Below are positions 3,001 through 64,000 of a DNA stretch of 64,000 nucleotides, piece after piece. Within the stretch, counting starts at the first letter, position 1, and each line of letters opens with the position of its first letter. This stretch comes from Macrostomum lignano (taxonomy: Eukaryota), in NCBI GenBank assembly GCA_002269645.1, contig NIVC01001843.1, positions 62,001-126,000 on the forward strand, read 5' to 3'. The notes below the pieces were generated by a model that made no database searches, was not told the DNA's origin, and saw only the letters and a list, made by a program, of their open reading frames with translations. The position numbers and the translations under genes are program-made.

Positions 3001-3382
3001 AATTAACACACTACAAGTGTGCAATCTGTTAACAAGATGCACTATCAAAACAAGACACTGATCAAGGCATATCAAGCATCAGCACCTAAGTCCATTTAGA
3101 CTTTCTTGGTTAATGTCCATACTGGGGAGCTGAAGCTACTAAGATTGCATAGACAAGCCCTGACAAACCGACAAGGGCACATGCACTACACATTAATACA
3201 TTGATGCAGAGATTATAGAGAAACAATGCATCAAGTCTATAGCTCATAATCACTGACTCATGTTGGTTGATAAAGTGGAAGCCAATAGCTGTGTACTGCT
3301 CATATTAGCAGAATTGTTGCATAAATAAATCAAATCAATTAGTTTACCGAGGTGTTTCAATTCTGCTTATGTGTCACAAATT

Positions 3383-6689: not shown

Positions 6690-17005
<10,316 letters not shown>

Positions 17006-20259: not shown

Positions 20260-21079
20260 GTCGAATTTGACTTTGCAATTAATTAATTTTACCGCCAGGT
20301 GTAAACTCTTCAGCGATCATAAAAATATTAATAGGAAATTTGATTTCTATCAGCTGGACATTGCAGAAGCAATCAGCTCGATTGGCACTTTCTTTGACTT
20401 GACTATCAATCTCGCCGTCTCCGATCGCCGCGAGTTCCCTCCATAGATTCCAAATTTGGAAATGGACACCGCAATAAAAATGCAGGCTAATTTCCTACTT
20501 GCATGCACTCTCACTGATTGCTTCCTCAATAGGCTGCAGCTGCGGCCCTTAAAACAGTATCAAGTTTTGTTCCACGGTTCAAGACTGAGACAGCCAGCAA
20601 AAAGTAGCGTAGCTCTGCATGGTTAGCAACGTATCTGAGATTGAATTTCGGCACCACAAAGAGGGCTTTTATTCGACAAAATGAAATTAAATCGGCTATA
20701 AAATGTGTATGTTTCGTATTATGCTACTTATTTTTAAACTGCTATAATTCAAGTAGTATATAGCCACTGAAATATCTCTCCGCAGAACACGTGTCGCAAT
20801 TATTAGTGTTAGTTATTAGGCTTAAATCAAGGGTATTTACATGTAATCCTTCAATCTAACTCAGAATTCTAGCCCATTACGAAGCCTCAAAATAATGATT
20901 AATACCAAATACTCAATTCTCATTAACGCCTGTCTGTCAAAATTGTATATGGCTCACACCTGCCCTAGCAACAGCCTCGGGCAACCGGCCTACGTCCAAG
21001 CCTAAACGTTGACTGCAATAATGTAGAAATGCACGTTTAACAAGCAGTTTGTGGGCTCTCACAGTTCTCAATTGAAATG

Positions 21080-21570
21080 GTGAGAAAGGAGAGCATGAGA
21101 TAGAAGATGGTGAGATAGGAAAGGGTGAGAGAGGAGAGGGTGAGATAGGAAAGGGTGAGAGAGGAGAGGGTGAGATAGGAAAGGGTGAGAGAGGAGAGGG
21201 TGAGATAGGAAAGGGTGAGAGGGAGAGGGTGAGATAGGAAAGGGTGAGAGAGGAGAGGGTGAGATAGGAAAGGGTGAGAGAGGAGAGGGTGAGATAGGAA
21301 AGGGTGAGAGAGGAAAGGGTGAGATAGGAGGATAAGACAGGTGAGGGTGAATAGGCGACAATGAAATAGAGGGTGAGATAAAAATGAGGTAGGAGGGGAC
21401 GTGTGATAGGAGAGTATGAGATAGAAGAGGATGAGATAGGAGAGAGTGGATAAGAAAGGGTGAGATAGGAGGTTGAGATAAGAGAGGGTGAGATAGAAGT
21501 GGGTGAGATAGGAGATAGCGAGATATGAGATGGTGAGATGGGAAATAGGAAGGACATAGGAACGTAGACA
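21080..21570. repeat. Purine-rich minisatellite (gggtgagataggaaagggtgagagaggaga), about 30-bp unit
   Basis: Tandem GA-rich units. Confidence 0.9.
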
Positions 21571-22419
21571 GGGTGAGAAAATGAAGGGACACGCCCAGTA
21601 AGAGTAAAATAATCAAACACAATTACAATCCAAGTGTGTTACTGCAGGCGCACAACTTATATCAGTAATTATAATTATTATAACAAAGCAGATCCGATGG
21701 CCTTTTATTTAACCCGAATAAAAAACACACAGACAAGCGGGGTGACAAACAGGAAAAGGGCCATGGGGGTTTGGGTCATAAAAGAACACATAAAAAGGGG
21801 TGTGCAATTGTAAGCAAACCAGACAACAGTGAAACAGGTTATTCAAATTAATTTCAATGCTTCTTTCGCATGTTTAAATTTCAGCAATATGTTAATAAAT
21901 GATGTTTGTTGCTAACACATTCTGTTGTTAATTAATTAATTTCAGAATCTCAATTATACCAATATTTAATATGCAAACAAACTTAATCAAGAAATTACAC
22001 ACATTGGACACTTACTAATATTATAATAGTGGTAATATTGGTGCTTCTTAAATCAGAACCATTTTTATGTAGTGATTTATAAGTAGTATTATGATTAATA
22101 ATTATTAATCATTAATATTACAAATACTTACTATTAGTAAGCACACAGCGTATGAAATTAAGAGAACAACAAAAAAGCACAAAAAGGTTCAAGCGGCAGT
22201 GGAACACACACGCGACAATGCCATCGAGAGTAGATCATGTTATAAAGGATTATGAATTTGTAAGTCATAAAACTGCAAATTAGATTAACAAAAATATATA
22301 GAGCAACAGGTGCGGCCACCACATTAACTGAGACAATTATAATTTTGACAATGTTAGTCTGAGTTTTATGTTTTCGGCTTTTGTGTTGATTGAACATTGA
22401 GTGTGGCGGGATCGCTGAC

Positions 22420-25700: not shown

Positions 25701-28700
25701 GGAAGTGCAACTGCCGGCCTAGCAGATACTTGAGCACGTGGCGGGACAGCTGCAGCGGGCACAGATCGTTCTGCAGTAGGCAGAGGCCCATCACGCGGCC
25801 AACATTGCGATAGGCGCAGTTCACTAGCGACGGCTTGCGGACTCTGCGGGGGTGGGGGGCAGGGGGGCAGGGGATAATGATCCCTCAGCTTCACCTAAGC
25901 TTCACCAGTCTCTCCGTTCAAGTGGGCATGCTCAAACACGCGCAGAATTACCAATGTTCTGCCACTAATAACACAAGGTTTTCAAATCACGTGACAGCTT
26001 ATTTTCCGTGAAATAGAACGTGATTAATAAACAATAGATATTTCGTGACAATGAGCCCGAACACACACACACACTCACACACAACTTGAGCATTAGGATT
26101 TGGATTTTATTGTGAGAACGATGAGAATTAAAGCCGCTAGCTAAACTAGACAGGAAAAAATAGACATCAAAGACGCCAACCGGCTTTAGCGCGCTACAAA
26201 AGCTGTTTTATTTTCTGCAGCTGATTTGGATGGAGACAGTAGCGCCGACACTTCAGAACAATACATTGTGCGGCATCTCAGAAGGGTGAGGAGCTCTCAA
26301 GAATTGTGACTAGGTAAAGAACTCCCAGTTCCCAGTTCATATATAGTAGCTAAAGGGGAAATCTGTTAATAGGGAATTCCCAACTACTCCACTGACATAA
26401 TCCCAAAATGAGTCAGTTCCCCTGACACGATCCCCAAATGAGTCAGTTCCCCTGACACGATCTTCAAATGAGTCAGTTCCCCTGACACGATCCCTATGAT
26501 GAGTCAGCTTCCCTGACATCATCCTCACATGAGTCAGTTCCCCTGACACGATCCTCAAATGAGTCAGCTCCCCTGACACGATCCCCATAATGAGTCAGTT
26601 CCCCTGAAATGAACCCTAAATGAGTCAGTTCCCCTGACACGATCCTCAAATGAGTCAGTTCCCCTGACACGATCCCTATGATGAGTCAGCTTCCCTGACA
26701 TGATCCCCAAAATGATTCAGCTCCCCTGACGTAATCCCCAAATAAGTCAGTTGCTCTGAAACGATCCCCATAATGAGTCAGCTCCCCTGACACACACGAT
26801 CCCCAAATGAGTCAGCTGCCCTGACACACACGATCCCCAAATGAGTCAGCTCCTCTGACATACACGATCCCCATGATGAGTCAGTTCCCCTGACACGATC
26901 CTCAAATGAGTCAGTTCCCCTGACACGATCCTCAAATGAGTCAGTTCCCCTGACACGATCCCTATGATGAGTCAGCTTCCCTGACATGATCCCCAAAATG
27001 ATTCAGCTCCCCTGACGTAATCCCCAAATAAGTCAGTTGCTCTGAAACGATCCCCATAATGAGTCATCTCCCTTGACACACACGATCCCCAAATGAGTCA
27101 GCTCCCCTGACACACACGATCCCCAAATGAGTCAGCTCCCCAGACACACACGATCCCCAAATGAGTCAGCTCCCCTGACACACACGATCCCCATAAAGAG
27201 TCAGCTCCCCTGACACACACGATCCCCATAAAGAGTCAGCTCCCCTGACACACGATCCCCAAATGAGTCAGCTCCCCTGACACACACGATCCCCAAATGA
27301 GTCAGCTCCCCAGACACACACGATCCCCAAATGAGTCAGCTCCCCAGACACACACGATCCCCAAATGAGTCAGCTCCCCAGACACACACGATCCTCAAAT
27401 GAGTCAGCTCCCCAGACACACACGATCCCCAAATGAGTCAGCTCCCCAGACACACACGATCCCCAAATGAGTCGATATAAAACCGCGATCCCCACCTTGG
27501 CGAGTAGTAGCCCCGTTTGCCGGGCTGCCAGAACAACGGGCAGAGCTCCTCCTCTTCCTCTTTGCTCAGCGACGACACGCCCGACTGTTGGCCAAAGCCG
27601 GCCACCATCGCTTCAATCAGCGGCGAGCCGCTGCTGCCACCGCCGGTTGCCGAACTGGAGGAAGCCGCGGCTGATGCACTGTTAGAAGAGGCAGCCGCGG
27701 CGGCTGCCTGATGCAGCACCTCCTGCTCGTCGATGATCTCTTTGGCTTCGTCGACGCGCTGACGAAGACCATCTTCGTTAGCTAGCAGTAGCAGCAGGTG
27801 AGAGCTGGGCAGGTCCAGCAGCATTCCGGTGATCTTGCCCGCGTGGTCCGGCTGGAGCTGCGCCACCTGGGGAAAGCAGGTGAGGGTTGTTAATTAGCAC
27901 ACTATTGTTGGCTTATTGTTGTTAAATAGTTTCCAACTGGGAAATCTCACCCTAGTAGATCTATACAAACTGGGAAATCTCACCTTAGTAGATCTATACA
28001 AACTGGGAAATCTCACCCTAGTAGATCTATAACAACTGGGAAATCTCACCCTAGTAGATCTATACAAACTGGGAAATCTCACCCTAGTAGATCTATACAA
28101 ACTGGGAAATCTCACCCTAGTAGATCTATAACAACTGGGAAATCTCACCCTAGTAGATCTATACAAACTGGGAAATCTCACCCTAGTAGATCTATACAAA
28201 CTGGGAAATCTCACCCTAGTAGATCTATAACAACTGGGAAATCTCACCCTAGTAGATCTATACAAACTGGGAAATCCCACCCTAGTGGATCTATAACAAC
28301 TGGGAAATCTCACCCTAGTAGATCTATAACAACTGGGAAATCTCACCCTATTATATCTATACAAACTGGGAAATCTCACCCTAGTAGATCTATAACAACT
28401 GGGAAATCTCACCCTAGTAGATCTATAACAACTGGGAAATCTCACCCTAGTAGATCTATAACAACTGGGAAATCTCACCCTAGTAGATCTATAACAACTG
28501 GGAAATCTCACCCTATTATATCTATACAAACTGGGAAATCTCACCCTAGTAGATCTATAACAACTGGGAAATCTCACCCTAGTAGATCTATAACAACTGG
28601 GAAATCTCACCCTAGTAGATCTATAACAACTGGGAAATCTCACCCTAGTAGATCTATAACAACTGGGAAATCTCACCCTAGTAGATCTATAACAACTGGG

Positions 28701-31700
28701 AAATCTCACCCTAGTAGATCTATAACAACTGGGAAATCTCACCCTAGTAGATCTATAACAACTGGGAAATCCCACCCTAGTAGATCTATAACAACTGGGA
28801 AATCTCACCCTAGTAGATCTATAACAACTGGGAAATCTCACCCTAGTAGATCTATACAAACTGGGAAATCTCACCCTAGTAGATCTATAACAACTGGGAA
28901 ATCTCACCCTAGTAGATCTATAACAACTGGAAATCCCACCCTAGTGGATCTATAACAACTGGGAAATCTCACCCTAGTAGATCTATAACAACTGGAAATC
29001 CCACCCTAGTGGATCTATAACAACTGGGAAATCTCACCCTAGTAGATCTATAACAACTGGAAATCCCACCCTAGTAGATCTATAACAACTGGAAATCCCA
29101 CCCTAGTGGATCTATAACAACTGGGAAATCTCACCCTAGTAGATCTATAACAACTGGGAAATCTCACCCTAGTAGATCTATACAAACTGGGAAATCTCAC
29201 CCTAGTAGATCTATAACAACTGGGAAATCTCACCCTAGTAGATCTATAACAACTGGAAATCCCACCCTAGTAGATCTATAACAACTGGAAATCCCACCCT
29301 AGTGGATCTATAACAACTGGGAAATCTCACCCTAGTAGATCTATAACAACTGGGAAATCTCACCCTAGTAGATCTATACAAACTGGGAAATCTCACCCTA
29401 GTAGATCTATACAAACTGGGAAATCTCACCCTAGTAGATCTATAACAACTGGAAATCCCACCCTAGTAGATCTATAACAACTGGAAATCCCACCCTAGTG
29501 GATCTATAACAACTGGGAAATCTCACCCTAGTAGATCTATAACAACTGGGAAATCTCACCCTAGTAGATCTATAACAACTGGAAATCTCACCCTAGTAGA
29601 TCTATAACAACTGGGAAATCTCACCCTAGTAGATCTATAACAACTGGGAAATCTCACCCTAGTAGATCTATAACAACTGGAAATCTCACCCTAGTAGATC
29701 TATAACAACTGGGAAATCTCACCCTAGTAGATCTATAACAACTGGAAATCTCACCCTAGTAGATCTATAACAACTGGAAATCCCACCCTAGTGGATCTAT
29801 AACAACTGGGAAATCTCACCCTAGTAGATCTATAACAACTGGAAATCTCACCCTAGTAGATCTATAACAACTGGAAATCCCACCCTAGTAGATTTATAAC
29901 TAAGAAATCTCACCCTAGTAGATCTATAACAACTGGAAATCTCACCCTAGTAGATCTATAACAACTGGGAAATCTCACCCTAGTAGATCTATAACAACTG
30001 GAAATCTCACCCTAGTAGATCTATAACAACTGGAAATCCCACCCTAGTAGATTTATAACTAAGAAATCTCACCCTAGTAGATCTATAACAACTGGAAATC
30101 CCACCAGAAATGAGTGTTGAACACTCCCAAACCTTGAGTGTGGGAGTGTTCAACACTCCCAAAATGAGTGTTGAAAATCGGTTTCTCAACTTTGGTAATT
30201 AAGAAATCCCGAAATAATGTTTAATTAACAATCTAAAGAGAAATTTAATAGCCCACTACTTAAAAAACTACACACAGAGTTAGTTGTCACAATTTTAATA
30301 ACCCTAAATAAAACCTGTATTCAAATCTCAGGTTTCACCACACACAGCCCACAACAAAAAACCAACCTTGGGAAACAGTCGATCGCCAATCTGCCGTTTC
30401 CTACCGGCACTACTGGCCGGTGTGTAGGGCGCGGCCGAATAGGACAGGGTGCGGCCGTATCGCCGCATGCGCTGGCCTACAGCGGTACGACTGCTAGTGG
30501 TATAGGACGGCCTATTGCTGTACACAGCTTCCATTGGTAGGCGCTCGTCCGAGGATACGGCCTCGACAAATGCCGTGTAGAAACTTCTAGCAACACCGGA
30601 GCCTTCGCCGGCTTCGTCTTTGAACGTGACTTTCACTCGATGACAGGCCAGAGCGGGACTGGGGCCGCCGTGCCGACGGTAGAACTCTTGGTTGAGCTGC
30701 TTGAACGTCTGCGGCAGCAGGCTCTGACGGTCGCGCTCCACCTTTGGGTTGATGGAGTTGAGTGCGCAAATAAGCTGGGCTAATAGGCTATTAGTGACAC
30801 AGATGGGACATGGGCTGTGTGAGATCACGTGATCAGGGAGGTCAGTGAGTATTAAGGAGAGTCAGCAAGGGGGTCAAGCTATCAGGAGAGGATCAAATGA
30901 CAGGAGATCCACTGAAGAGGGGTCAGGGACCTACTGAAGGGGGTCAGGGACCTACTGAAGGGGGTCAGAAGACCTACTGAAGGGGGTCAGGAGACCTACT
31001 GAAAGGGGGTCATAAGACCTTACTAAGGCGGTCAATAAGACGATAAGGGTAGGAAGTGAATACCTTAAAAAACTACGAATATTAAGCAACAGGGGAAACA
31101 GGAGAAGCTAAAGCCTTCAGGCAAGCACTAATCACTAGTATTGAGAATACTTGAGCACACTATTGATTAGAAATAAGAAATTGCTAGAACCCCAAACAAA
31201 AACCATACGTTGCGTTAATGTAAGAGAAAAACAGAATTGAAAAATAATGACAATAAAGGAGCCGAGAGAATAGAGAAAGGAGACGACGAAAGAGAAAGAA
31301 TTAGGCCGTGCCAGTTACGCAACCAGTTTCAAACCTTTGCGCGGTTGGCTAGGTCCAATTATATGCCAAGGCTCTCTTTGTTTCCTACATAATAGTCTTA
31401 GACAGATGTAGTGGAGGCTTATAATATATAAGCAGAGGTTGTAGAAAGAGTGTTAATAACGGGGAGCTGAAATCTTTATTGAGAACAGCCAGTTGATAGA
31501 CCGATCAAGAGTATACTCAATGTGCATGTTATTAAAACTGGTCTCTTAATCCAACAGGAAGAGATGCCTTCAATTCAAGCCAGCGTGAAATTCACCCTAA
31601 AACAGCTTCAGCTTTCAGTGATGCAATCCCAGCCCGAGTTTAGAGGTAAAGCTTATTATATATACATTATCCTGCAGCTGCGCGGTACAGGTGCGCGAGA

Positions 31701-37700: not shown

Positions 37701-40700
37701 CAAGTGTTGCGTAACCACTTTTTAAATTAATAATTATACGCTAAATTATTATAATATTCTTCATATTTTTACTGTAACTAAATGTAAACTGTGGTAAGAC
37801 TATAATAACTAGGACTTTGCAGGCACCTTGACACATACATACTCGATAGATGCATGTTTCAAGACCAGATAGGCAGCTGAGCGGCAAGCTTCTTAGCAGC
37901 GTCATCTATTCTGTTAGCCATTTTTATGTATCCTCTAGGGATGGCAGGGAAGAGTGACGGTGGGGGGGAGGAGACAGAAAGCAGGCAGGAAAGCGAGAGA
38001 GACAGCAGCGGCTGTGGGGTCAGTTGGGGAGAATTCAGCAGTAACTCAGCTCAGTGACAATCGGCCTCCAAAATTTCCATCGCTCATCGTGTAGTTATTT
38101 TTTTCTATATAAAAAAACACATTTACACATGTAGAAGCTACAGCCCCAACACGCTCGACCTTCTGACCCCAATTAGTTGCTTTCCGCATGAGGTAAATTT
38201 TCAAATACATAAATATATGCAGATGGGAGAGAAAAGAGAGGAGAGGAGGAGATGGGAAAGGAGAGAAGATAGGGAAATGAGAGGAGAGGAGATGGGGAAT
38301 GAGAGGAGATAGGGAAATGAGAGGAGAGGAGATGGGGAAAGAAGAGGAGAAGAGATGGGGAAAGGAGACAAAGAAGAGGCGAAGAGAGGGAATGAAGTGT
38401 GTGAAGGGCCGCAACTGAAGTACAGAAAGCAACCGAAAGAGGCAAGTAGAAACAGCAGGTGAAGCAACATAGTAGCAGTGTAGTAACATAGTAGGCGCAG
38501 TATTCAACAGTGCAAATGGGCACATCAGCTTTTCTGCTTCAATTTCAAACAGATCAAGCAAGCAAGCTTCATCCAACTTCACGAGATGCACTTTTAAAAC
38601 AAAAAGTTGAAAAGAACCCCCGAAGCCAAACCAAGAATGCAAGAAAAAACAGGCAGGAGCCTCCGATTCAATAATAAATAGGATATACGCCGGATGGCGC
38701 AGGCAAAACACACACTTGGTTGTTGCACGCAGATAGGCCGGTACAAGATAACCCCCCCCCCCTCGGGCCAGGGAAGTGCAGAAAAAAGCTCAGACAGAAG
38801 GAATCGTGTGGCAGATGTTGTTGAGGAGGGGGGACTTCTAGACGCGCTAGGCCATGGACGACTAAAAATAACACCCGTTGGACTGGAAGGACTTTGACGT
38901 TAGTGCGGCAAACATTTCTGTCAATTTACACTAATTAATGTAGCAGGGTAGTCAGGATTTTCATTTGGTTATGGTTGGGGTCACGAGCCAGATTCTAGCC
39001 AGGGTTGAAGCAGCAAAAGTGAATAAAATATCATTGTAACATAATAAGACATGGTTTTGGTAGTTTAGCGCCATGAAAAAGGTTTTAAACATTTGGCTCC
39101 ACGGACAAGGTTTTGACACCAAACTAGCACCATGGAAAAGTTTTTAGCAATTTGGCGCCACGGTCAAGGTTTTAGCGCTACTTTAGCGCCACGGACAATG
39201 TTTCAGCGCTACTTTAGCGCCACGGATAAGGTTTTAGCGCCAATTTAGCGCCACGGACAAGGTTTTAGCGCCAATTTAGCGCCACGGACAAGGTTTTAGC
39301 GCTACTTTAGCGCCACGGACAAGGTTTTAGCGCTCGCTAGGTTGGCGCCACGGACAAGGTTTTAGCGCCAATTAAGCGCCACGGACAAGATTTTAGCGCT
39401 ACTTTAGCGCCACGGACAAGGTTTCAGCGCTACTTTAGCGCCCCGTACAATGTTTCAGCGCTACTTTAGCGCCCTGTACAATGTTTCAGCGCTACTTTAG
39501 CGCCACGGACAAGATTTTAGCGCTACTTTAGCGCCCCGTACAATGTTTCAGCGCTACTTTAGCGCCCCGTACAATGTTTCAGCGCTACTTTAGCGCCACG
39601 GACAAGATTTTAGCGCTACTTTAGCGCCACGGACAAGATTTTAGCGCTACTTTAGCGCCACGGACAAGGTTTCAGCGCTACTTTAGCGCCCTGTACAATG
39701 TTTCAGCGCTACTTTAGCGCCCTGTAAAATGTTTCAGCGCTACTTTAGCGTCCCGGACAAGGTTTTAGCGCTAATTTAGCGCCCCGGACAAGGTTTTAGC
39801 GCCAATTAAGCGCCACGGACAAGGTTTTAGCGCTACTTTAGCGCCACGGACAAGGTTTTAGCGCCAATTAAGCGCCACGGACAAGATTTTAGCGCTTCTT
39901 TAGCGCCCCGGACAAGGTTTTAGCGCTACTTTAGCGCAGGGACAAGGTTTTAGCCCCAATTTAGCATCAATAAGAGAAGAGATTGAAACAAAACAAAGAG
40001 GGTAACAATACAGTTTATAATAATGCTAGTTTCTTGGGAGAACAAGATGTTCTGAATGGATTTTTTGTCAGCAGTGTGTGGAGTAAAGCAATCACACAAC
40101 TCTAGCATGTAGATCTACATCTAGGCATGTATAGCACAAGAGGGAATTTGTCCAATTTCCTTTATCAACGCTGCTTCAGCTTTCATATGCCAGCCGGTTC
40201 TTACACTAACCCGAATCTGACAGATGTTTGTGTGCAGTGCAGCGGCCGAGCCGTGTTTAAATGAGACGAGGGAAGGAAATAGGCGAATAGGACGCCAGAA
40301 GGACTGGTAAGCAAATATTAATAATTCCCTGTGTATGGCAGTACAGATTATATTATAATAATAGTATCTATGTAAAAAATAATTTACACCCACTAAAGTT
40401 GCGCCACTAACTAAAAATGGTATACAATGACTATTCGCTTTAAAACATCCTGCATTGCACACTATTTTATCGTTTAAAAGTTGCACAGATGTACTCTTAC
40501 ACTGCAATAGTGCTATTACATTTTATGAAATAGAAAACGAACTTCATTTTACAGTGTACACTCGTACATGTACAATCTGCGCTATCCTGTACCTATCTGT
40601 ACAAGGTTACAACCGTACAGGTAAATGAGATTTACAAGGAACCAGTACAAGATGATAGCTGTACAGATAAAAGGGATGCACAAGGAATCAGTACAAGACT

Positions 40701-41871
40701 GTACAGGTACATATGTATAAGATCCAGTACAAGACTGTACAGGTACATATGAACAAGATCCAGTACAAGACTGTACAGGTACATATGTACAAGATCCAGT
40801 ACAAGACTGTACAGGTACATATGTACAAGATCCAGTACAAGACTGTACAGGTACATATGTACAAGATCCAGTACAAGACTGTACAGGTACATATGTACAA
40901 GATCCAGTACAAGACTGTACAGGTACATATGTACAAGATCCAGTACAAGACTGTACAGGTACATATGTACAAGATCCAGTACAAGAACACAAGTGTACAA
41001 GCACATATGTACAAATAACTAAGATCTAGCTACTTATAGTCTAGAAAAGACGGTTACCTCCAGCACGAAAGCTGAAAGTTGGCACCTCTAACCTCACTCT
41101 TTACATATGCATCCAGCATCCTGTCAGGCCAGTATCATTACTGCATCTGCCGAATAGAGACAGACACACAGATGAAGACAGATTATCAAGGACAGACGCA
41201 AACTCCAGCATGTAGAAGATCTGCATGCCCCGCATGTGTGTGTGTGTGTGTGTGTGTCATTCCCACGGGATTGGTATTGGCTGAGCAGGTTGGATAGAAA
41301 ATAAATAAAAGGGATAACAAGATGCTGCTTATCATTGGAACAGCAAAGTGAAAGTAGAGAAGCGAAAGGATATCAGAGTATATCTATATTAGTAGCTAAT
41401 CGTGTTTGCTGAGATGCCAAGGCTCACGAGTGGGGGAATTGCTGAGATGCCAAGGCTCACGAGTGGGGGAATTGCTGAGGTGCCAAGGCTCACGAGTGGG
41501 GGAATTGCTGAGATGCCAAGGCTCACGAGTGGGGGAATTTCTGAGATGCCAAGGCTCACGGGGGAATGGCTGAGATGCCAAGGCTCACGGGGAGGAGGGA
41601 ATTGCTGAAATGCCTTGCGCTAGATGGATTATGCTTAATAACTTTCTCAGAAATAGAAAACTACTTCTAGTATTAGGTAATCCAATAATAAAAAACTTAG
41701 GTCAGCTTAGCTTGTAGTTATTAATCATCTGAGCCAAAGCTAAAGCGCTTACCAGAACTCCATAATGTCGGCAGTTATAAGTTATGATGCAAATATCTAC
41801 ATTTAAGCTTCCGGGATGGAAAAATAGCTTAAGTTGCTGCTGCTGCTGCTGAGAGAGAGAGAGAGAGAGAG

Positions 41872-47000: not shown

Positions 47001-50000
47001 CTGGCCAGCATTCCAGTAGGCGGCGCAATGCTTTCTGAGCAAATTTCGGCGGCTCCAAATCGCTGTCGGGCATGCCGCCAGAGTCTGGATTGGATTGATG
47101 ATGCTGCTGATGATGATGATGCTGAGATTGAGAATGATGATGATGCGGATGATGATGCAGCATCTCGTGCTGTTGCTGCTGCTGGTGATGATGCTGATTA
47201 TGAGCGGCCGCTGCTGCTGCTGCGGCAGCTACGGCAGTGCGTGCCCGAGCTGTGGCCAGAGCAGATGAAGAGCTTCGGCTGCTGGGATGCAGACTGGGCC
47301 TGTACTGCTTCTGCTCGTTGAGCTGGCGGCCCACAGTTCGAGCTAGGAATAGCAGGATTGGCTCGCCTCGCTTGTTCGGCAGCAGGACAAGGGAGGGCAT
47401 GGCGAGTAGCAGGCGGTCCAATAGAAGCGATCGATCGTGCTGAGAGCCGGCGATTAGGGATCTGCGGAATAGGGCGCAACGGTGGGAGATTATTATGCAT
47501 GATAATGGGATAATGATTGATGAAGATGGGATTAGTATATACACACATGGGATGGGACAGATTAGCACACTTACTTGCAGCGACATTTTTCCCAACAATC
47601 GCAATAAGCAGTCGGAGAAGTCCGTTTCAATCGGCAATCGTGACCTTTATGACAGACTCTGGCGCACTCGGTGCAACAGCAGAACGTGTGCATGAGGCCG
47701 CAGGTTCTGCACTCGAATATGTCCTGATTAATATGCGACGGCCCGGTCCAAGTGAAACTGCAGGTGTCGTTCATGCACAGTACTAGCAGAGGATTATCAT
47801 CCGGACCGCTGCCAGGCGGATAAAGCATATTAGCCAGCGCCAATTCGTCTCGCTGAGCAATAGAATTAGTAGCCACATCCAGCAATAGCAAAGCAGAATC
47901 GTAGGCACGCAGTGATACGGCCAGCATGAATGGTGTCAGACCTTCGGCATTCTTAGCGCTTAATAGGCTGGGCAAATGCGGCTGCACAGCCGGACAATGG
48001 CACAGCAGCAGTTCGAGCACTTCTCTACGCCTGATAGTGGAGTCGTCAACTATGGGAGCGAATTGCCAGGTAGGCCCGGAGTCCGAGCCTCCGCCGCCTC
48101 CGCCGCCGACATTCGACGACATTGACGATGAGGAAGACGAACCAGCTGAAGCAATTTCTCCCGGCTGCTTCAAACGGAGATCTTCCGCTTGCTGCTGCTG
48201 CTGCTGCTGTTGTTGTTGATTGCTAGAGCTGCCGCCGCGGCGTAGAAACGTCTCGGTGACCTGTAGTTATTTAACATAGAATATGCCCTCGTTTGTCTAC
48301 TCATTTCTAGTAGTAGTATGGTAAACATTGCGGCGAACAAACAGCTATCAAATGAGAAATAAACAGGCTTGAGTAAATATCCAACTTAAACTGTGGATTT
48401 CAGTATGCAGATCTCTAAGCACGGAAATCTCATTCCTATTCAGTGCATTTAAACCTGGACAACTCATCCTTCTTCAGTACATGTAAATCTAGACCCAAAA
48501 ATCTCAACCCTTATTCAGTACATCTAACCCCGGAAATCTCACCCGTTACTTAAAGATACAGGTCTCTAAACCCGAAAAACTTACCCCTACCCAGAGATAC
48601 AGGTCCTTAGACTCGAAAATCTCACTCTACTCAGCATATGCAGATCTCAGAATCCGGAAATCTCACCCATACCCAAAGCTACAGGTCTCTAAACCCAGAA
48701 ATCTCACCCCCTACCCAGAGATACAGGTCCCTAAACCCGGAAATATCACCCCTACCCAAAGATACAGATCCCTGAACTCGGAAATCTCATCCCCTACCAA
48801 GAGGTACACGTCTTTAAACCCGGAAATCTCACCCCCTCCTTAGAGATACAGGTCCCTAAACCCGGAAATCTCACCCCCTCTTTAGAGATACAGGTCTCTA
48901 AGCCCGGAAATCTCATCTCAACTTGAGAACTTGCAACTCATCTCTTACTTATTAGAGATCTACCACCAGCATAGTGATAAATGCACTTACAGAAGACGAT
49001 CCAATTGGATTCCAACTGCCGCCGCCTCCGCCAGCCGCTGCCGAGTCGGCCGATGACTGCTGCGACTGCATACCAGCAGCTTGAGCAGAATTAGCCGAGC
49101 TACTACTATTAGCACTACTATGAGTAGCCATAGAATGCTCAGCATGATTAGAAGTTGGCGCGGTGACGCTAACAGCCAGATGAATAACATTCCTGCCGCC
49201 GTCAATTCGTTCGTTCAGACAGGCGGCCGCCAACCGGTCCGGCCATTCGATGGCTAACCGTTGCAATTTGGCAACATCTCCGCGCAGTACATGCGGAGTC
49301 ACTAGCGGGCATGCGAACACTAATAGACTGAGATGATAGGTTGGCGAATTGCTAGATGATGAAGAATTGCCGGACATGGCAGAGGCTGCGCCTCGACTAG
49401 CAGCGCCGCCTCCTCCGACGCCGCCTGACGATTGTACAACAGTCTGCAATGCGGCCGATTTTAATGGCGGCAAATCTGGCCAAAACGGCGTGGCCGCAGT
49501 GTCTTTGCCGGCGCGCAGTAAAGGATAAATTGTAGCACTGCCGTCTCTTATTAGAAAGCATTTGTCTGTGCCGGCTAGCAGTTGCATTGAGGTGCCAGGC
49601 GGACTGAATTGGCTGGCCGGTGTGAGTAAGCGGACTGCGGACAGCAGGCGACCCTGGTGGGGACGAAGGGGGGGGGGTAGAGAATTAAGCAAATCAATAT
49701 ACGATGGAATATATATGAAAGTACTCCGAAGATGGGAAGAGAATAGTTACCCATCAGTTGAGGAGACTGACCCACAAGATGGGGAGACTGATCCACAAGA
49801 TGGGGAGACTGACTCACAAGATGGGGAGACTGACCCACAAGATGGGGAGACTGACTCACAGGATAGAGAAGACTGACCCACAGCATAGGGAAGACTGACC
49901 CACAGGATAGTGAAGACTGACCCACAGCATAGGGAAGACTGTCCCACAGCATAGGGAAGACTGTCCCACAGCATAGGGAAGACTGACCCACAGAGAGGAC

Positions 50001-53000
50001 TGACCGACCAGTTAAGGAGACTGACCCACAGGATAAGGAAGACTGACCCACAGGATAGGAAGGACTGACCCACAGGATAGTGAAGACTGACCCACAGCAT
50101 AGGGAAGACTGTCCCACAGCATAGGGAAGACTGACCCACAGCATAGGGAAGACTGACCCACAGAGAGGATTGACCCACCAGTTAAGGAGAGTGACCCACA
50201 AGACGGGGAGACTGACCCACAAGACGGGGAGACTGACCCACAAGACGGAGACCGACTCACAAGACGGGGAGACTGACCCACAAGACGGAGACCGACTCAC
50301 AAGACGGGGAGACTGACCTACAAGACAGGAAGACTAACCCACAGGATAGGGAAGACTGACCCACAGCATAGGGAAGACTGTCCCACAGCATAGGGAAGAC
50401 TAACCCACAGGATAGGGATGACTGACCCACCAGTTGAGGAGAGTGACCTACAAGACGGGAAGATTGACCTCAATAAGGGAAGATTGACCTACAAGACAAG
50501 AAGACTGACCCACAGGATAGGGATGACTGACCCACCAGTTGAGGAGAGTGACCCACAAGACGGGAAGATTGACCCACAGGATAGGGATGACTGACCCACC
50601 AGTTGAGGAGAGTGACCCACAAGACGGGAAGATTGACCCACAGGATAGGGATGACTGACCCACCAGTTGAGGAGAGTGACCCACAAGACGGGAAGATTGA
50701 CCCACAGGATAGGGATGACTGACCCACCAGTTGAGGAGAGTGACCCACAAGACGGGAAGATTGACCCACAAGACGGGAAGATTGACCCACAGGATAGGGA
50801 TGACTGACCCACCAGTTGAGGAGAGTGACCCACAAGACGGGAAGATTGACCCACAGGATAGGGATGACTGACCCACAGGATAGGGATGACTGACCCACAG
50901 GATAGGGATGACTGACCCACAGGATAGGGATGACTGACCCACCAGTTGAGGAGAGTGACCCACAAGACGGGAAGTCTGACCTATTGAGACTGAACGCTAT
51001 ATTTCCCAAAAGCGTAAATACGCACTCCCATACAGTAAGCATACCTGCAAACTGTGAGTCTGCTGGCAGACCCGTCCGCCTTGTCTTAACAACACGTGCA
51101 GTTGAGTATTCTCAACAGCCACAGCCAGTACATCGGAGCCTCCAACGCCGAAACCAGTGGCCGCGGACACAAGCGGCACGCGTTTCGGTATCTTCTGATA
51201 GAAGTCCGGCACCCTGGGACAGCCCGGGCCTTTAATCACCGACAATTCGTCGCGTTTCAATAATCGACAATCTTGTAAAGGATTATTAGCGGCGCCGCTA
51301 CTAGCGGAACCAATTGCACCGATGCTGCCAACGCTAGACAATTCCTCCATTGACAGGGTCGACGATGAGCCGGCAGCGGCAGCAGCAGCCGCAGCCGCAA
51401 ACGCAGCCGCTGCGTCCTTTAAAAATCGAACGGCAACAATATTACCGTCAACTTTCAACACCCGACCAACTGGTTGGCTTCGACCATCTTCAACAAAGAT
51501 CACATCAGATAAGAACCATTCTTCTTCTTCTTCTCGTTCGGCTTTCTCTTTGGCGTCGCGCATAGGAGTTGGGGCTTTCTTGCGCTTGAACGGGCCGGGG
51601 CTGACCAGCACGGGGCCGCTCTGATCGCTGCACGTGCTTGACGCCGGACTAGGCGGCGGCGGCATGTCGAGCTTATCGTCGCGTTCTCTCTGCTCAGCCG
51701 CCTGCTGCTGCTGACCTTGACGTTGTTGAGCAGCAGTTGTCGATGTTGAACTACTGCTGCTAGTGCCGCTGCCGCCGCTGTTGCTGATACCGCTGATTGC
51801 GGCCGCTCCAGCCGCTGCAGTTGAAGTCGCCTCGAGAATATCTTTGGCGGTTCGAATTCGAAACCTGCGAATATGTGATCAGGTTTTGATTGTTTTGCCG
51901 ACTCCCCTGAGCAGGCGCACAAGCGCGCGGATACGTACGCAGTCAGACGCACAGGCACACACTCACACAGGAGTGTACAGGGACCCTAACTTTATTTATC
52001 GTTGGGGATGTACACTTCACTGTGCCTTGGGGGGTTGGCCCTCAAGGCCGTTAATTGCATGAGCAGAGCCAAGCCGAGGTTACAATTGGTAAATGGTACC
52101 TAGGCCAAGAAGCTTTACAGAGTCGTTTTCGAGTCATTGCAGGTAACGCAGGTAAAATACGAGTAGGAAAGAAATAACTCTCTAGACGACTTAATTGGGG
52201 CGTTTTATTGTCTGCGACTTTAAAACCCGACTCTGGGGCCGTTAAGTCTTATCTGAGGCGTGCTTGAGTCCCTGTAGAATCACAAGAGTTGCGTCTAAAG
52301 CGCATCGGCGTCACTTTATGAACTAGTATCAAATTTCGCATACAAGAGTCGCTAGGGTTGTTTTCAATTACTTTTCAGCGGTCTAAATTTGGTAACGTTC
52401 CAAATTTAGGATAACAAAACTAAGTTGATGTGTCTCACAACCATACATGAGCAACCCCCTGATTTACACCGGCCGTGCAACTTACTTTTTGACCAAATAA
52501 ATGCGACTTACCTATGAAAGAAAGCTAAGCAAAATTAACGTAATTTTGGGTAAACAGCAGGAGTAACCATGACTGTATTATAAGGGTAAATGCCTCGTCA
52601 TCTCAATTAGTACTTTTTTGGGTGGGCACTTTTGCGACTGAGCTTGGCTGGGCCCTCGCCAGCCGGTCGGGTGTTGCCGCATGTATGTCACTAACAAACC
52701 CTATGCCTAAAAAACTATTGATAAATGAATTTTTCACCTGCAGCTGTCAGTCAGAGACCAAGCGTCCTCCAGCAGTACGCCAATTTTCGGTCTGGGACCT
52801 TCGCCGACACGAAATCCGACAGCGCCGGCGTGAAATATCGGCGCCGATTTCATGCAGACAAAAGCGCCGGGGTGAAGATCGCGACGTTCGTCGTTTTGAT
52901 TAGCGGCGGTGTCGTGTTGCTGCTGCTGCTGCTGCTGGCTGCCGGAGCCAGTAGTTGTCTTAGTTCCACTGCTACTGCCGCATCTGCCGGTGGAAGTCTT

Positions 53001-56000
53001 CTTTCGAGCTTTCTCGATAGCTTTTCGGCGACTGCTGAATGGCAGGACACCCCTGTGGAGAGAGACAGAGTGATTACGGATTAAATGTGGTCAAGGTGAA
53101 TTGAGGTCACACGGCACGATGGGGTCATTTTATAAAGATCATGACTGTAGAAAGGATGATGAGGCTATAAGATGAAACGATGAGGTCATACAAGAGCATG
53201 AGGACATACAGCTCATGGAAGATGTCATGTCATATAGAACTCGTTGAAAGACAGCGAGGTCATACAGGAACACAATAAGTGAAGTCATAAAAGAAGGCGA
53301 CGAGTAAGGTCATACAGGAACACGATAAGTGAGGTCATAGAGGAGCACGATGAGTGACTCAGAGTGAGGTCATACAGGAGCACGATAATTAAGGTCATAC
53401 AGAAACACGATGAGTGAAGTCATAAAGGAAAGCGATGAGTGAGGTCATACAGGAACACGGTAAGTGAGGTCATACAGGAGCACGATGAGTGAAGTCATAA
53501 AGGAAAGCGATGAGTGAGGTCATACAGGAACACGGTAAGTGAGGTCATACAGGAGCACGATGAGTGAGGTCATACAGGAGCACGATGAGTGAGGTCATAC
53601 AGGAGCACGATGAGTGAGGTCATACAGGAGCACGATAAGTGAGGTCATACAGGAGCACGATAATCGAGGTCATACAGGAACACGATGAGTGAAGTCATAA
53701 AGGAAAGCGATGAGTGAGGTCATAGAGGAGCACGATGAGTGAGGTCATACAGGAGCACGATAAGTGAGGTCATACAGGAGCACGATAATCGAGGTCATAC
53801 AGGAGCACGATGAGTGAGGTCATACAGGAACACGGTGAGTGAAGTCATAAAGGAAAGCGATGAGTGAGGTCATAGAGGAACACGGTAAGTGAGGTCATAC
53901 AGGAGCACGATGAGTGAGGTCATACAGGAACACGGTGAGGTCATACAGGAACACGATGAGTGAGGTCATACAGGAGCACGATAATTAAGGTCATACAGGA
54001 ACACGAAAAGATTAATACAGGAAGACAGAATGAGATTATAGATCCTGGAAGACGATGAGGTCATATAGCAAGACAGAGCGAGGTCAGTCATACAGGAAGA
54101 GATGATGTCATATGAGCTTTAAAACTGCATGATAACAAAACTAAGCAAGTGGCCATAACAAACATCACTCACCACCAGTAGATATCGCCGCTGGCACATT
54201 TAGCAGCCGTTAGCAGAGACGAACAATAAATGGAGACAACTCGATCGGTTTGAAAATCCGGAAACAGATGAGCCGGATGCTCCAACCGGCTAGCAACCGG
54301 GGCTAAAGCTTCGTCCATAAATGTAGCAACCCGGCCATTGTCAGTGAGCACAGAACAGCGAGTTGTATGAGCGGCTAATGAAACAATCTTCTCCTTGTCC
54401 AAGCCCAGGCCAACAGCACGGGGATGAAACACTGGCGGGTCTCCCGGGCAATAGTAGGGCTCCGGCTCCGACCAGCGCCATTGGTGCAGAGCTCCATTAG
54501 AAGATACGGCAACTAATTCTGTGTGCATTGCCGCGATTTGAACGAATTTGTGCACGGAACCGTCTCGATCTACCCAGTATTGAAGATCTTCGCCGAACTG
54601 GATAGGAGAGCCACTGCTAGACTGGCCGCCTGAACGGTGAATGACATTCCAGGGTTGATGTGAAAGTGATGATAATACGAGAGAAAACAAAGTACTTTTA
54701 GATTGTTTCATTATACTTTTACATCTTCCCCATCTCTCATCTTATCATCTCCCTTCCGATCTTATCATCTCCCATCCAATCTTATCATCTCCCATCCCAT
54801 CTTACCATCTCCCATCCCATCTTACCATCTTCTATCCAATCTTGCCATCTCCTATCAAATCGTACCATCTCCCATCCAATCTTAACATCTCCCATCCAAT
54901 CTTATCATCTCCCATCCAATCTTATCATCTCCCATCCCATCTTACCATCTCCCATCCCATCTTACCATCTTCTATCCAATCTTGCCATCTCCTATCAAAT
55001 CTTGCCATCTCCTATCAAATCTTACCATCTCCTATCAAATCTTACCATCTCCCATCCAATCTTAACATCTCCCATCCAATCTTATCATCTCCCATCCCAT
55101 CTTACCATCTCCCATCCCATCTTACCATCTTCTATCCAATCTTGCCATCTCCTATCAAATCTTGCCATCTCCTATCAAATCTTACCATCTCCTATCAAAT
55201 CTTACCATCTCCCATCCAATCTTAACATCTCCCATCCAATCTTATCATCTCCCATCCAATCTTATCATCTCCCATCGCATCTTACCATCTCCCACATCCC
55301 ATCTTACCATTTTCCATCCAATCTTACCATCTTCCATCCAATCTTACTATCTCCCATCCAATCTTATCATCTCCCATCCCATCTTACTATCTCCGACACC
55401 CATCTTACCATCTCTCATCTCATCTCCCATTCATTTTTTTATATCTTACCCCATTCCTCTGACCAACCTAAAATCCAACATCTGTTACAATCTTTAATAC
55501 AATTTATACGAATCATTACAATTGCCAACTCTAACTCTGTTGTACCTCGAAATCTCAAAACCACAAAACCACAAGAAAATTGAAGACCCAAATAGCAAAC
55601 TAACCAGTGATCTTAGCCTTCTGCTGCTGCTGCTGCTGCTGCTGCATAGCGGAATCAAATTCCGCATTAAGCATCACCGTCTCCATTCGTCGGCGTTTCG
55701 TACCAGCTCCGCTGCCGCCACCGCCGCCGCCTCCGCGACCTCCTTCGGCTCCAGACCACGCGGCCAGCACAGCCTCAGAGGATGGCTGCATTCTAGCCAC
55801 TCGTTCGGGCAGCAATTGAAACGCCGTCATATCAGGCGGCAATCTGCGCCTCAGACTGGCGTAATAAACATCGTCGGGAAAGACGGCGTCGCCTTCGTAC
55901 ATCAGGCCGGACTCGCCGCTGCTCAAGCCGGCATCTAGAAGGCTCATGAGATCTTCGGGATCTTCGTCCCAATCTAGATCGTCGTCAGCTTCGTCGTCTT

Positions 56001-61084: not shown

Positions 61085-61370
61085 CATACATGCGCAACCT
61101 CCAAAATTTGGTCGGCCGTGCGACTTAGTTTTAACAAAAATGCGACGTAGTTTTCGGCCAAAAATGCGACTTACATGAAAAAACCTGAAAGCAAAATTAA
61201 CGCAACTTTGGGTAAACGGCAGGAGTAACTATGACTGTCTTTATTAAGGCAAAATGCTTCGTCAGCTACTTAATACTACTTTGGTATTTATTTGGGTGGG
61301 CATTTTTGCAACTTACCTTGGTTGGCTGCCAAATCAGTCGTCCATATCGGCCAACTATTGTGCATGTATG
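61085..61370. mobile_element. MITE with CATACATG termini and TGCGAC subterminal repeats, same family as 52442-52687
   Basis: Left end catacatgcgcaac and right end attgtgcatgtatg. Three tgcgac motifs at 61119-61172. Shares blocks such as tttgggtaaacrgcaggagtaacyatgactgt with the 52-kb copy. Confidence 0.6.
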
Positions 61371-61814
61371 GTTTTGACTCTTGTCATTCCTTATCGTATT
61401 TGTACCCCATGTGGCACTAGAACAGTACACTTGACACGGAGTGTTTTAGGCATGATTGTACAGTGTAAGGTTGCAAAAGTGGGGAGTGGCAGAGATACAT
61501 ATGTATATATAGCTGTATGAGTATGATGGCACAAGCTAAGGCTAAGTCAATGCATGCAGCGATAAAAGCAGTCTGTAAAGCCAAATAGTGAAAGTTAACC
61601 TTAACTTATAGCACCTTGGCAGCCTATGCTGTCTGCCTGCATCTGATACGAGCATATAACTAAACTACCAAGGCAATTGGTTGTATTTACACTTACTTTC
61701 TGTACATGAATTGGTAAAGGTAAGGGCTTTTAAATGTTTTATTTATATAGTAATACTCATAAATCAATTTTATTTTATCACCAAAATCATATACTCGACT
61801 TAATCTTTCACAGA

Positions 61815-64000
61815 ATGATGTACAGCCTTAGTTGTCTTTGCCTACTGATTCTAAGTGGCATCCTAGCTATCAATGGTATTCTAGCTGAGAGTGAGTGCTC
61901 AATTGTTATAAATGAGTTAAATACTGATGAGCCTAATATTGGATCTCAAGAATTTTCAGAGTTCATTGAGCTAAAGAAAGTTTGTTCTACAACTGCAATG
62001 CTATTAGGATCAGTGCCAGTGAGACTCCATGATTTTCTTCTGATTGGAGTTCAAGAATATAGCGGCGATTTTAGACGACCTGTGGTTTCATTTTCTGCTG
62101 ACTTCTATCGGTCCTCGGGCTTCAAAACGGACAGCAGTTTCTTTGTTATTGCATCAAAAGGGAAGCAGGAAGCAGCAGATATGTTTTTTACCGATACATC
62201 TATTGGGTATCAGGGAAAAACTAGACATGGGCTGCCAAGTTCCGCTCCTAGTAGATCATCGCAGTCATCCATCATTGATTTTTTCAAGTCTGCTAGTAAG
62301 ACAATTCCAACAGAACCAAATGCATTAAAGAATGGGAATGGTAAAAGTGCTATGGCCATTATTCTCTTGTATCAACGAGACTTCTAGATCAGAATCGGAC
62401 AGTTCAAGTTCCACAACTGCCAGTAGCATTGGAAAACTGCGACTAGCTAAAATGCATGCAACACAAAGAAGACCTGTTTATGAAGATAAAATTATCATTG
62501 ATAACTCATTAGCTGAAATTATTAGGAACAATAACAGGTGCACATTTTTGAGTCCATTTATCGTAGGCTAAGAGACAAGCCCAACTACATCTTAAAGCCA
62601 GCAAGAGAATGGGATGAACTTGGTCATGAGGACTATTCAATAAACCGGTGCCCTGAATCCAGCAGTGAGTTACGAAAGCCTTTGCTTTTTACAAGGTGGA
62701 AACTTGGACAGTTGACTCCAGGTAGATAAAATGACTGCTCAGGTGCTCATTGGATTTTAGAGGACAATATTGAAGCCATCATAAATACACCTTCAAGAGA
62801 AGCATGTACATTGGCAGACTCAGCATTAGCATCTGCTTCATCAGCAACAGAAAGAATCGAAATGCGACTAGCTCCTGCTCCAGCTCCATGTTCTGAAAGC
62901 TCACACCGTAGTGAATTGGCCAGGTCCTATGAATTTTCAGAGCAAATAGCAGCTAATCGAGATCATGCTGTTCAAACTGCTGCTGCAGAAACTTCTAATT
63001 TTTGCTCTGCTGCAAATGTACAGGAAAGAAGAGAGTTGTTGGAGAATGACCAGCAAACAAGCAAACTACAAGTGGAAATTATTAGGCAAGTAAATATTCA
63101 AAGACAATCAACGAAACGATCACTTTGCCAAAGTCCTATTGTTGATTTAGATTCGAGCGACTCAAGGGGTTCAGGTGATGTTGAAATAGTACAAGTAAAT
63201 ACTGCAGAAGCAGGGCCATCGCAAAGAAAAATACCATGCATAAGCACATCTGCAGACGCATGTCTAGCCACTTCAGCATCAAAGCCCTCGTCTTCCTCTA
63301 TGATGGGCGAAAATATTGAAGTTTTCCCTAAAAAGGACTGGGAGGATACATCTGGTTTTCGAGAGGAGTGGTTACATTCTTTGGAGATGCACCAGTCACA
63401 GTAAGTAAATGGAAACTGACGAACTGTAAATTAATGTATAGTGTATTGTGTATTGCACTTATTAGCATATTGCTTTTAGATACTCACAAATAGTCCAAAT
63501 CCCAAAATATTCTCTAATTTGACCATTGCAGATCATTTTCAAGAAAATTTGTGTCACAAGAAATGAAGACATGGTTTCAATATGTTCAAAACACCGAAGA
63601 TCTATCAAGATCTGGAATACAATGTCGGATCTGCAGAAAATTTTTGAATGCACATAAGAAAAAGGAGACAAATCTAGAGAGCCAACGTAAGTTAACTTTT
63701 GCAACAGAACAAGGCTACATTCCCAAAGGTCATGCAAAAGATAGCGTACGAAGAAAACTACAGGAACATTCATCAAATACACTTCACAGTGACGCCATAA
63801 AGTGGATGAAGGAAAAACATACTTCAGTTCTTGCAAAGCAACTCAAACAGATGAATGAGGCCGCTAGACTAGCTAAAACTAAACGAGATGAAATAACAGC
63901 CCGAGTTTTGACAACAGTTTTTTCGCCGAAGTCAAATCTAATATTCCATTCAGTGCTCATCCAAATATGATTGATTTACAAGTAAAAAATGGGTTGGATA
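61815..64000 (+). pseudogene. Disrupted gene: signal peptide, lamin-tail-like (LTD) domain and linker, spliced to a KIAA1586/ZNF862-like hAT transposase (TTF-type Zn finger); runs off the window end
   Basis: MMYSLSCLCLLILSGILAINGILA, then VINELNTD...EFIEL, FFVIA, NALKNG...AIILLY and DYSINRC...WKLGQLTPGR*NDC. Phase-2 intron 63401-63531 joins into WFQY...CRIC...LQEHSSNTLHSDA and, after a frameshift, KSNIPFSAHPNMIDLQVKNGLD. Lesions: frameshifts near 62380, 62540 and 63920, and an in-frame TAA at 62727-62729. Confidence 0.72.

Follow-up and report, generated by a model that had tools for sequence, protein, structure and literature searches.

A probable, decayed hAT-superfamily transposase gene with a signal-peptide-like leader and a bacterial-type lamin-tail-like domain in DNA of Macrostomum lignano

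The window analysed here comprises 64,000 nucleotides of DNA of Macrostomum lignano (assembly GCA_002269645.1, contig NIVC01001843.1, positions 62,001 to 126,000 of the forward strand); positions given below are those of the window unless a contig of a relative is named. At its 3' end, on the plus strand, the window (61371-64000) probably holds the 5' two-thirds, or less, of a decayed transposase gene of the hAT superfamily, which is FAM200/ZBED5/KIAA1586-like ('Buster-like') and belongs to a distinct clade. The proteins of this clade probably consist of, in this order, a hydrophobic leader, a bacterial-type lamin-tail domain (LTD), a linker with a basic patch, a WEDT..F..W..HQ motif, a zinc finger, an Asp-Asp-Glu (DDE)/RNase-H core and a hAT dimerisation domain. 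In the sub-lineage of the window, leader, LTD and linker would lie in a single exon, and a conserved phase-2 intron would join this exon to the finger and the core, with the same degree of confidence. Window positions were read from a three-frame translation of 61700-64000; relatives are cited as proteins (P numbers) or as contigs (L numbers), and L001-L003 encode P0001.

The feature begins with a conserved upstream region (61371..61719, plus strand, as for all features of the gene), the putative promoter and first non-coding exon. Similarity to L001 begins abruptly at 61371 (85% identity between L001 146-427 and window 61371-61647, none further upstream; blastn), and this loss of similarity is compatible with the end of an element. 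Relative to the window, L001 carries an insertion of about 660 nt (L001 428-1085, between window 61647 and 61659), which may be a nested element. An intron in the 5' untranslated region (UTR; GTAAGG...CACAG, 61720..61813), whose 3' end lies 1 nt before the ATG, had been considered plausible in the initial annotation of the window; its splice sites are kept in L001 and L002, an analogous GTAAGT...TTTGCAG interval lies about 27 nt 5' of the ATG of L004, and the intron stays putative.

Exon 1 opens at ATG 61815 with the hydrophobic, signal-peptide-like leader MMYSLSCLCLLILSGILAINGILA of 24 residues (61815..61886). The lamin-tail-like domain of bacterial type (61887..62765, about 290 aa) includes a family-specific insertion and an S.NRC...TPG..NDC tail; its motifs are ESECSIVINELNTD (61887-61928), EFSEFIEL (61950-61973), FFVIAS (62139-62156), YSINRCP (62634-62654) and the tail LTPGR-TAA-NDCSGAHW (62712-62765), in which a TAA interrupts the motif. 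In all, four lesions disrupt the domain in the window copy, either by breaking the frame or by removing sequence. The low-complexity, Ser/Ala-rich linker (62766..63332) has small conserved motifs (C..SSHRSELAR, RD.AV) and contains a basic patch, SQRKIPC (63219-63239), which is possibly akin to a nuclear localisation signal (NLS). Exon 1 is closed by the conserved KDWEDTSGFREEWLHSLEMHQSQ motif (63333..63400), i.e. KDWEDTSGFREEWLHSLEMHQS with the pattern KDWEDTS..W..HQ (63333-63398) and a last codon that is split in phase 2 by a GT-AG intron of 131 nt (GTAAGT...TTGCAG, 63401..63531). Exon 2 (63532..64000), which is cut by the window end, opens with SFSRKFVSQEMKTWFQYV and contains the CxxC half of the finger (CRIC, 63623-63634, within GIQCRICRKF), the HxxxxxH half (HSSNTLH, 63767-63787) and the beginning of the RNase-H-like hAT core, AEVKSNIPFSAHPNMIDLQVKNGLD (63925-63999). 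The window sequence stops before the hAT catalytic core; core features are attributed to it by homology via the relatives.

The N-terminal module and the transposase are one protein, as judged from relatives with a single open reading frame (ORF), an intron in L012 and a gapless junction. Both halves are held by single-ORF relatives of 1000-1250 aa (P0007, P0011, P0012, P0015, P0026, P0030, P0039, P0040 and P0046), and a local hidden Markov model of the N-domain matched 29/29 proteins of at least 900 aa, including those that were recovered via the transposase half. When compared with the intronless relatives, the spliced window peptide is gapless across the junction (HQSQ|SFSRKFVSQEMKTWFQY vs HQSEYIKPEKIGSELKTWLVY). 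L012, the closest relative in which a core is present, with 58-75% amino-acid identity to the window in matched stretches, encodes on one contig the leader, the N-domain, the linker and ...KDWEDKSHFKEEWLHSLHTHQGK, followed by an intron (GTAAGT...TTTCAG, L012 1891-2068) and then by HFAQKFITEEMKTW..CRLC and the hAT core with the motifs VLDSTSD, TTDGAS, HHCAAHKLE and RIRWVASE; codon position and phase of this intron are the same as in the window. P0001 and P0002 (49% identical; BLASTP) both end exactly at the proposed donor, where GTAAGTA, and not merely TAA, is conserved in L001-L004; these four contigs end inside the intron interval, and alone they cannot tell a stop from an intron. The phase-2 intron at 63401-63531 of the initial annotation was thus confirmed, by the gapless intronless relatives and by the intron of like position and phase in L012, and so was the linkage of the LTD part and the transposase, with 29 or more relatives (900 aa or longer) that have both halves in a single ORF. 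In a subfamily (P0037, P0159 and matches of 350-395 aa), an intron is located inside the WE.T..F|..W motif and not after HQ; P0037 reads through this site, and P0159-type ORFs stop there. Intron positions thus appear to vary between the lineages of the family.

The relatives were collected in an exhaustive HMMER search with the stitched window protein without the linker as query, and 191 representative clusters (50% identity) matched at the cut-off of E<=1e-3; the exon 2 peptide alone found no match in a word-indexed search. The pattern seen in the window goes far past what chance would give. The contig names of the family point to marine metagenomes, including TARA Oceans, and further sources are sequencing-run assemblies. 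The architecture of the window gene was therefore found in other sequences as well, i.e. in these clusters and in the long single-ORF relatives. Mean pairwise identity is 28% for the N-domain, 15% for the linker and 35% for the core. A single P0001 sequence recurred in three runs of the same project, and the near-identical proteins of L006/L007, L008/L009 and L010/L011 represent the same locus in each pair, hence no element boundaries could be derived from them. Named members of the family are solely 'hypothetical protein' (cluster look-up), and full-text literature searches for LTD or lamin tail together with transposase, transposon or hAT returned nothing relevant; a hAT clade with an N-terminal module of leader and LTD is apparently unprecedented, and the family apparently undescribed. 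Two further observations were made on these contigs. In L010 (4136-4852) and L011 (4249-4965), the transposase ORF is followed, after about 340 nt, by an ORF of 238 aa whose N-terminus is hydrophobic and which has no match in Pfam; it may belong to the element as a second gene or to its flank. L008 (1-10) and L009 (1-9) come from different samples, one of them of TARA Oceans, and share their starting base, at which a poly-G run begins; this is either a sequencing artefact or a common assembly break.

The family is assigned to the hAT superfamily by its profile matches and conserved residues. Among six long members scanned, PF05699 (hAT dimerisation domain; Pfam cut-off, 21.4 bits) was found above the cut-off in P0011 (27.3 bits), P0015 (27.8 bits) and P0014 (31.9 bits) and below it in P0094 (19.7 bits), with no match in P0007 and P0012. 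The family profile matches the C-terminal region of the Hermes transposase (E 1.8e-5), and a match to PF27073 (FAM200-ZBED5_RNase-like) is precomputed for two relatives, which fits the earlier remark that the gene is KIAA1586/ZNF862-like. In 16 aligned long members (numbering of P0011), D619, D687 and E1072, the CxxH pair C716/H719, the pair R782/W783 and the finger ligands C459, C462, H500 and H506 are invariant; the assignment of the D-D-E residues as catalytic is by motif resemblance. The F and W of the WEDT..F..W motif are invariant in the 16 long relatives as well, and an invariant W lies upstream of the CxxC...HxxxxxH finger across the family. The earlier hAT assignment is thus upheld by PF05699 in the relatives, by the invariant D/D/E, CxxH and RW residues and by the Hermes match, and the relatives have the appearance of transposases that are, or recently were, active. 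On their own, the window pieces and the stitched domain matched neither a hAT nor an LTD family in Pfam. The finger had been described as of the TTF type: the CxxC...HxxxxxH pattern is present and invariant, but the label itself is not backed by a match to any Pfam finger family, either for the window pieces or for the long members.

Compared with the known hAT proteins (FAM200/ZBED5/KIAA1586/ZNF862-like 'Buster-like' proteins, with Hermes as the solved reference), the family shares the N-terminal CxxC...H..H finger, the motifs ..DxSTD.., ..SDGA.., CxxH, RW and ..ER.FS, and the C-terminal dimerisation domain; it differs by about 400 extra N-terminal residues, which comprise the signal-like leader, the bacterial-type LTD and the linker. 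The term 'cargo-carrying', which had been used for this lineage, is not quite apt, for the extra module belongs to the transposase polypeptide itself rather than being a passenger gene.

The N-domain was examined against the Pfam LTD family (PF00932; gathering cut-off, 34.3 bits). No match at E<=1 was found for the window pieces and the stitched domain, 5/50 family members matched at E<1 (best E 0.004, 17.9 bits), and the consensus sequence of the N-domain gave no LTD match; a sequence-profile search of the PDB with the N-domain yielded nothing relevant, only chance matches to fibroblast growth factors. A profile of 50 family domains (A5), when searched against 5.8 billion sequences, picked bacterial proteins, several of which have PF00932, an endonuclease I domain or a type IX secretion system (T9SS) sorting domain. 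Alignment of this profile with a profile of eight bacterial segments (A6) by hhalign gave a probability of 99.5% (E 4.8e-23) over 174 columns (template 2-178 of 178), including the S.RC...TPG..NDC tail, which is beyond the Pfam LTD model; the A6 partners had been chosen by the same A5 profile, and the match reaches well past the N-terminal motif that seeded it. Four of the eight A6 segments (P0196, P0200, P0204 and P0210) scored 46-61 bits, above the LTD cut-off, over positions 2-108 of the 109 of the Pfam profile. The N-domain is therefore predicted to be a divergent member of the bacterial LTD branch with an insertion of 60-90 aa, because of the A5/A6 profile alignment and because four of the bacterial partners pass the LTD cut-off. 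An AlphaFold2 model of the domain (50 sequences) consists mostly of strands (predicted local distance difference test score, pLDDT, 84.4; predicted template-modelling score, pTM, 0.86), and an alignment of three sequences gave no usable model (pLDDT 29). The earlier LTD assignment thus stands as profile-profile homology to bacterial LTD proteins, but Pfam, PDB-profile and Foldseek searches gave no direct support; likewise, in the type of profile and structure check that had been proposed, hhalign reached the bacterial LTDs whereas Foldseek returned only weak matches to immunoglobulin (Ig) V domains. Two cysteines of the domain (in NRC and NDC) are invariant in the family, and in the bacterial secreted relatives the corresponding cysteines are present or shifted together; we infer a paired pattern as expected of a disulfide.

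The closest likeness of this front end is to bacterial secreted or surface nucleases (ExeM; P0202, a Flavobacterium-type endonuclease I; P0210, T9SS-sorted), which likewise have a leader directly before an LTD. Shared are the first strand, IVINEI/L-D/N-x-D-x-P...EFIELK within a few residues of the leader, the tail S.R(C)....TPG..N(D/N)C, and homology that spans the entire domain; in several bacterial relatives, IVINEID.D.P..EFIELK comes immediately after a leader. The family differs from the bacterial nucleases in that the LTD is followed by a eukaryotic zinc finger and a DDE transposase and in that its genes have spliceosomal introns and lie in animal DNA, and from bacterial LTDs in its insertion of 60-90 aa, with a domain too divergent for the Pfam cut-off. 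No Endonuclease_1 or EEP domain was found downstream of the LTD in any family member scanned, and the likeness is of the front end only. In ExeM of Shewanella, the signal sequence comprises residues 1-24 and the LTD residues 28-128, and deletion of the LTD lowers the in-vitro activity and is tolerated in vivo (PMC6085458).

The metazoan lamin tail, which has an Ig fold, comes under the same Pfam LTD family; the family model, too, is mostly of strands, with weak Ig matches in Foldseek. The N-domain differs from the metazoan lamin tail in the profile comparison, in which hhalign gave a probability of 0.2% for the family profile vs the tail of human lamin A (the lamin query sequence being approximate). 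In the KRAB-, SCAN- and BTB-transposase fusions of tetrapods, a host exon is spliced onto a transposase exon. The window gene is alike in that splicing joins an upstream exon for a non-transposase domain in frame to a transposase exon, and it differs in that the added module is a secretory-type bacterial domain and not a nuclear regulatory domain, in that the catalytic residues are retained, and in that the fusion also exists as a single intronless ORF in many lineages; splicing, therefore, did not create the fusion.

In the window, the leader and the residues that follow read MMYSLSCLCLLILSGILAINGILA|ESEC, with a putative small-residue cleavage site after the hydrophobic region. The leader is a conserved feature of the family: it was found in 89/113 family proteins (79%) vs 35/1079 control windows (3.2%). 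The criterion was a Kyte-Doolittle mean of at least 2.0 over 11 residues just upstream of the domain, the sample consisted of proteins that begin with Met and include the domain start, and the controls were windows elsewhere in the same proteins. Across the family, the hydrophobic character of the leader is kept and its sequence is not. An apparent leaderless exception, P0015, is an artefact of ORF calling, since an upstream ATG in L010 adds MLLLLLCCGMSL to this protein. The chances that the leader is a functional secretion signal are roughly even.

The window copy is a non-functional pseudogene. Its lesions were measured against the closest intact relative, L001/P0001; P0001 (576 aa) is 88% identical to the stitched window protein (BLASTP) and 93% over the exon 1 alignment. 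Four lesions break the frame, as had been counted approximately in the initial annotation, i.e. three frameshifts and one stop codon: loss of 2 nt from a TCTC repeat (about 62383), after which TAG 62385-62387 is read in frame; loss of a single nucleotide from a T run (62548-62549); an in-frame TAA (62727-62729); and a 2-nt insertion in exon 2 (63923-63924). To these, two in-frame length changes are added, a 39-nt deletion (about 62530) with a loss of 13 aa, VHDMIIYGRSTQN, and a 42-nt indel relative to L001 within the linker (about 62987). Assembly errors could explain some of the changes in homopolymers, a class to which neither the TAA nor the larger deletions belong; the TAA is a substitution, as proposed, with a Glu codon at the same site in the relatives (GR-E-NDC). 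Between the window and L001, the ratio of non-synonymous to synonymous substitution rates (dN/dS) in exon 1 is 0.23 at dS 0.11; exon 1 was therefore under purifying selection before the window copy broke. A second decayed copy, in another genome, is represented by L012/L013, with an identical ORF layout in two independent runs; it stops directly after ...ECTFF, the same spot as the T-run frameshift of the window, and it is further disrupted by a stop within the core and by a frameshift at a run of A in the linker.

Transposases act on nuclear DNA, and a secretion-type leader with an extracellular-type bacterial domain on a transposase that looks catalytically intact is unexpected for this reason. 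In the working model, the finger would bind the element ends and the DDE core would cut and paste in the usual hAT way, and the LTD would serve as an additional module that binds DNA, chromatin or a surface. The leader would direct at least part of the product into the endoplasmic reticulum (ER), and the basic patch would import into the nucleus whatever fraction is leaderless, processed or mistargeted. In the simplest history, leader and LTD would have been acquired together from a bacterial secreted protein of the nuclease type. An ER leader conflicts with a nuclear enzyme; the conflict could be resolved by dual targeting or self-limitation, by an isoform without the leader, by a leader that does not function, or by an extracellular role of a domesticated family. 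The far-reaching version, that a hAT lineage captured a bacterial signal peptide and LTD and kept them under selection, and that the transposase is truly routed to the ER or secretory pathway (as a brake by which only a leaderless or processed form enters the nucleus, or for action on extracellular DNA, between cells or in horizontal spread), is rated as unlikely. If true, a conserved and functional secretion signal would be found here for the first time in a DNA-transposase family. A working leader would mean a new control or redeployment of a transposase via compartment targeting, and would clearly exemplify the capture of a module from bacterial secreted proteins by a eukaryotic mobile element; with a leader that does not work, the family would still provide a new accessory domain for hAT transposases. 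The 191 clusters are in either case material for testing the role of the poorly understood bacterial LTD. Annotation can easily split such genes in two, or record a 'secreted hypothetical protein' beside a transposase fragment.

Several points weigh against the reading of the window gene as a mobile hAT transposase with a leader and an LTD. Both introns (61720-61813 and 63401-63531) are predicted from sequence only. The PF00932 cut-off is reached by no family member (best, P0159 with 27 bits), and Foldseek against the PDB returned weak, generic Ig V domains (E>=0.03; template-modelling scores, 0.2-0.4) with no lamin tail in the top 50. The leader call depends on hydrophobicity and position, i.e. 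on a heuristic, and a transposase that is routed to the ER has no obvious route to DNA. As for mobility, the window copy extends past base 64000 at its 3' end, and no convincing terminal inverted repeats (TIRs) or 8-bp target-site duplications (TSDs) were found on five contigs, among them L005, L006, L008 and L011, for which scripted searches for TIRs with TSDs returned nothing or chance pairs of AT-rich sequence; a metagenome scan for the putative 5' terminus gave 0 matches.

A possible though somewhat doubtful alternative is that the leader does not work in the eukaryotic host and that the protein is nuclear, with the LTD as an extra DNA- or chromatin-binding or multimerisation domain. About one fifth of the complete N-termini are without a strong hydrophobic stretch; however, some of these exceptions are artefacts of ORF calling (L010/P0015), and the conservation of hydrophobicity, length and position, but not of sequence, is the signature of selection on a signal peptide. 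A basic cluster upstream of the W-motif, i.e. between the LTD and the core, is present in 33/48 relatives (e.g. SQRKIPC in the window and PKKKRV in P0002) and would suit the nuclear import of at least part of the product, and both the finger and the DDE core need DNA. The lower in-vitro nuclease activity of ExeM on deletion of its LTD is compatible with a role of the domain on DNA (PMC6085458); the invariant NRC/NDC cysteine pair, with its disulfide-like pattern, is a point against this alternative.

It is unlikely that the family is a domesticated, non-mobile host family, in which a hAT transposase and a secreted LTD were co-opted, e.g. for the handling of extracellular or ingested DNA, and of which the window copy would be a pseudogenised paralogue. 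The absence of a TIR or TSD on the searched contigs favours domestication, but the abrupt end of the similarity between the window and L001 at 61371 is element-end-like. The copy number of P0001, the closest intact relative, looks low, its one sequence being shared by three runs of a project, yet the lineages are many and divergent (191 clusters at 50% identity), and decayed copies are found in at least two genomes (the window; L012/L013). Leader and LTD are under constraint, and dN/dS in exon 1 is 0.23, but the 16 divergent long members have the proposed D/D/E, CxxH and RW residues without exception, as would be expected of active transposases. Extracellular nucleases are the bacterial counterparts, but a zinc finger and a basic, NLS-like patch would be odd for an extracellular protein, and a truly extracellular role in a domesticated family is likewise considered improbable.

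Two unrelated neighbours, i.e. a gene for a secreted LTD protein with its stop at TAA 63402-63404 and an independent hAT insertion with its start at Met 63563, are extremely improbable: ORF callers do stop P0001 and P0002 at this TAA, and an in-frame Met (QEMKTW) is present in exon 2, but the notion of two adjacent independent genes was rejected on the intronless relatives that read straight across the junction, on the position and phase of the intron kept in L012, and on the N-domain in every long protein of the hAT clade, with GTAAGTA kept past the TAA in L001-L004 and the exon 2 Met not conserved in the wider family, though kept in L012.

The window is metazoan nuclear DNA, as is concluded from a UBR5/hyd-like E3 ligase gene (HECT, MLLE and UBR-box exons; minus strand, 22700-58100), an XPR1-like SPX+EXS gene (plus strand, 7500-15800) and an enoyl-CoA hydratase exon (3371-3763). 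The element is intergenic and lies upstream of the UBR5-like gene; neither Rfam nor tRNA scans of the window returned a match. A short dispersed repeat of about 180 nt, which may be a short interspersed element (SINE) or a miniature inverted-repeat transposable element (MITE), occurs just upstream of the element (61142-61326) and in the UBR5-like gene (52476-52651), with 77% identity between the two. Furthermore, minisatellite-like arrays appear as repetitive ORFs (6814-7396, 20937-21622, 27894-28907, 40582-41004, 49575-51042 and 55002-55583), in one of which an 11-residue peptide unit is repeated about 30 times; these arrays are probably intronic tandem repeats.

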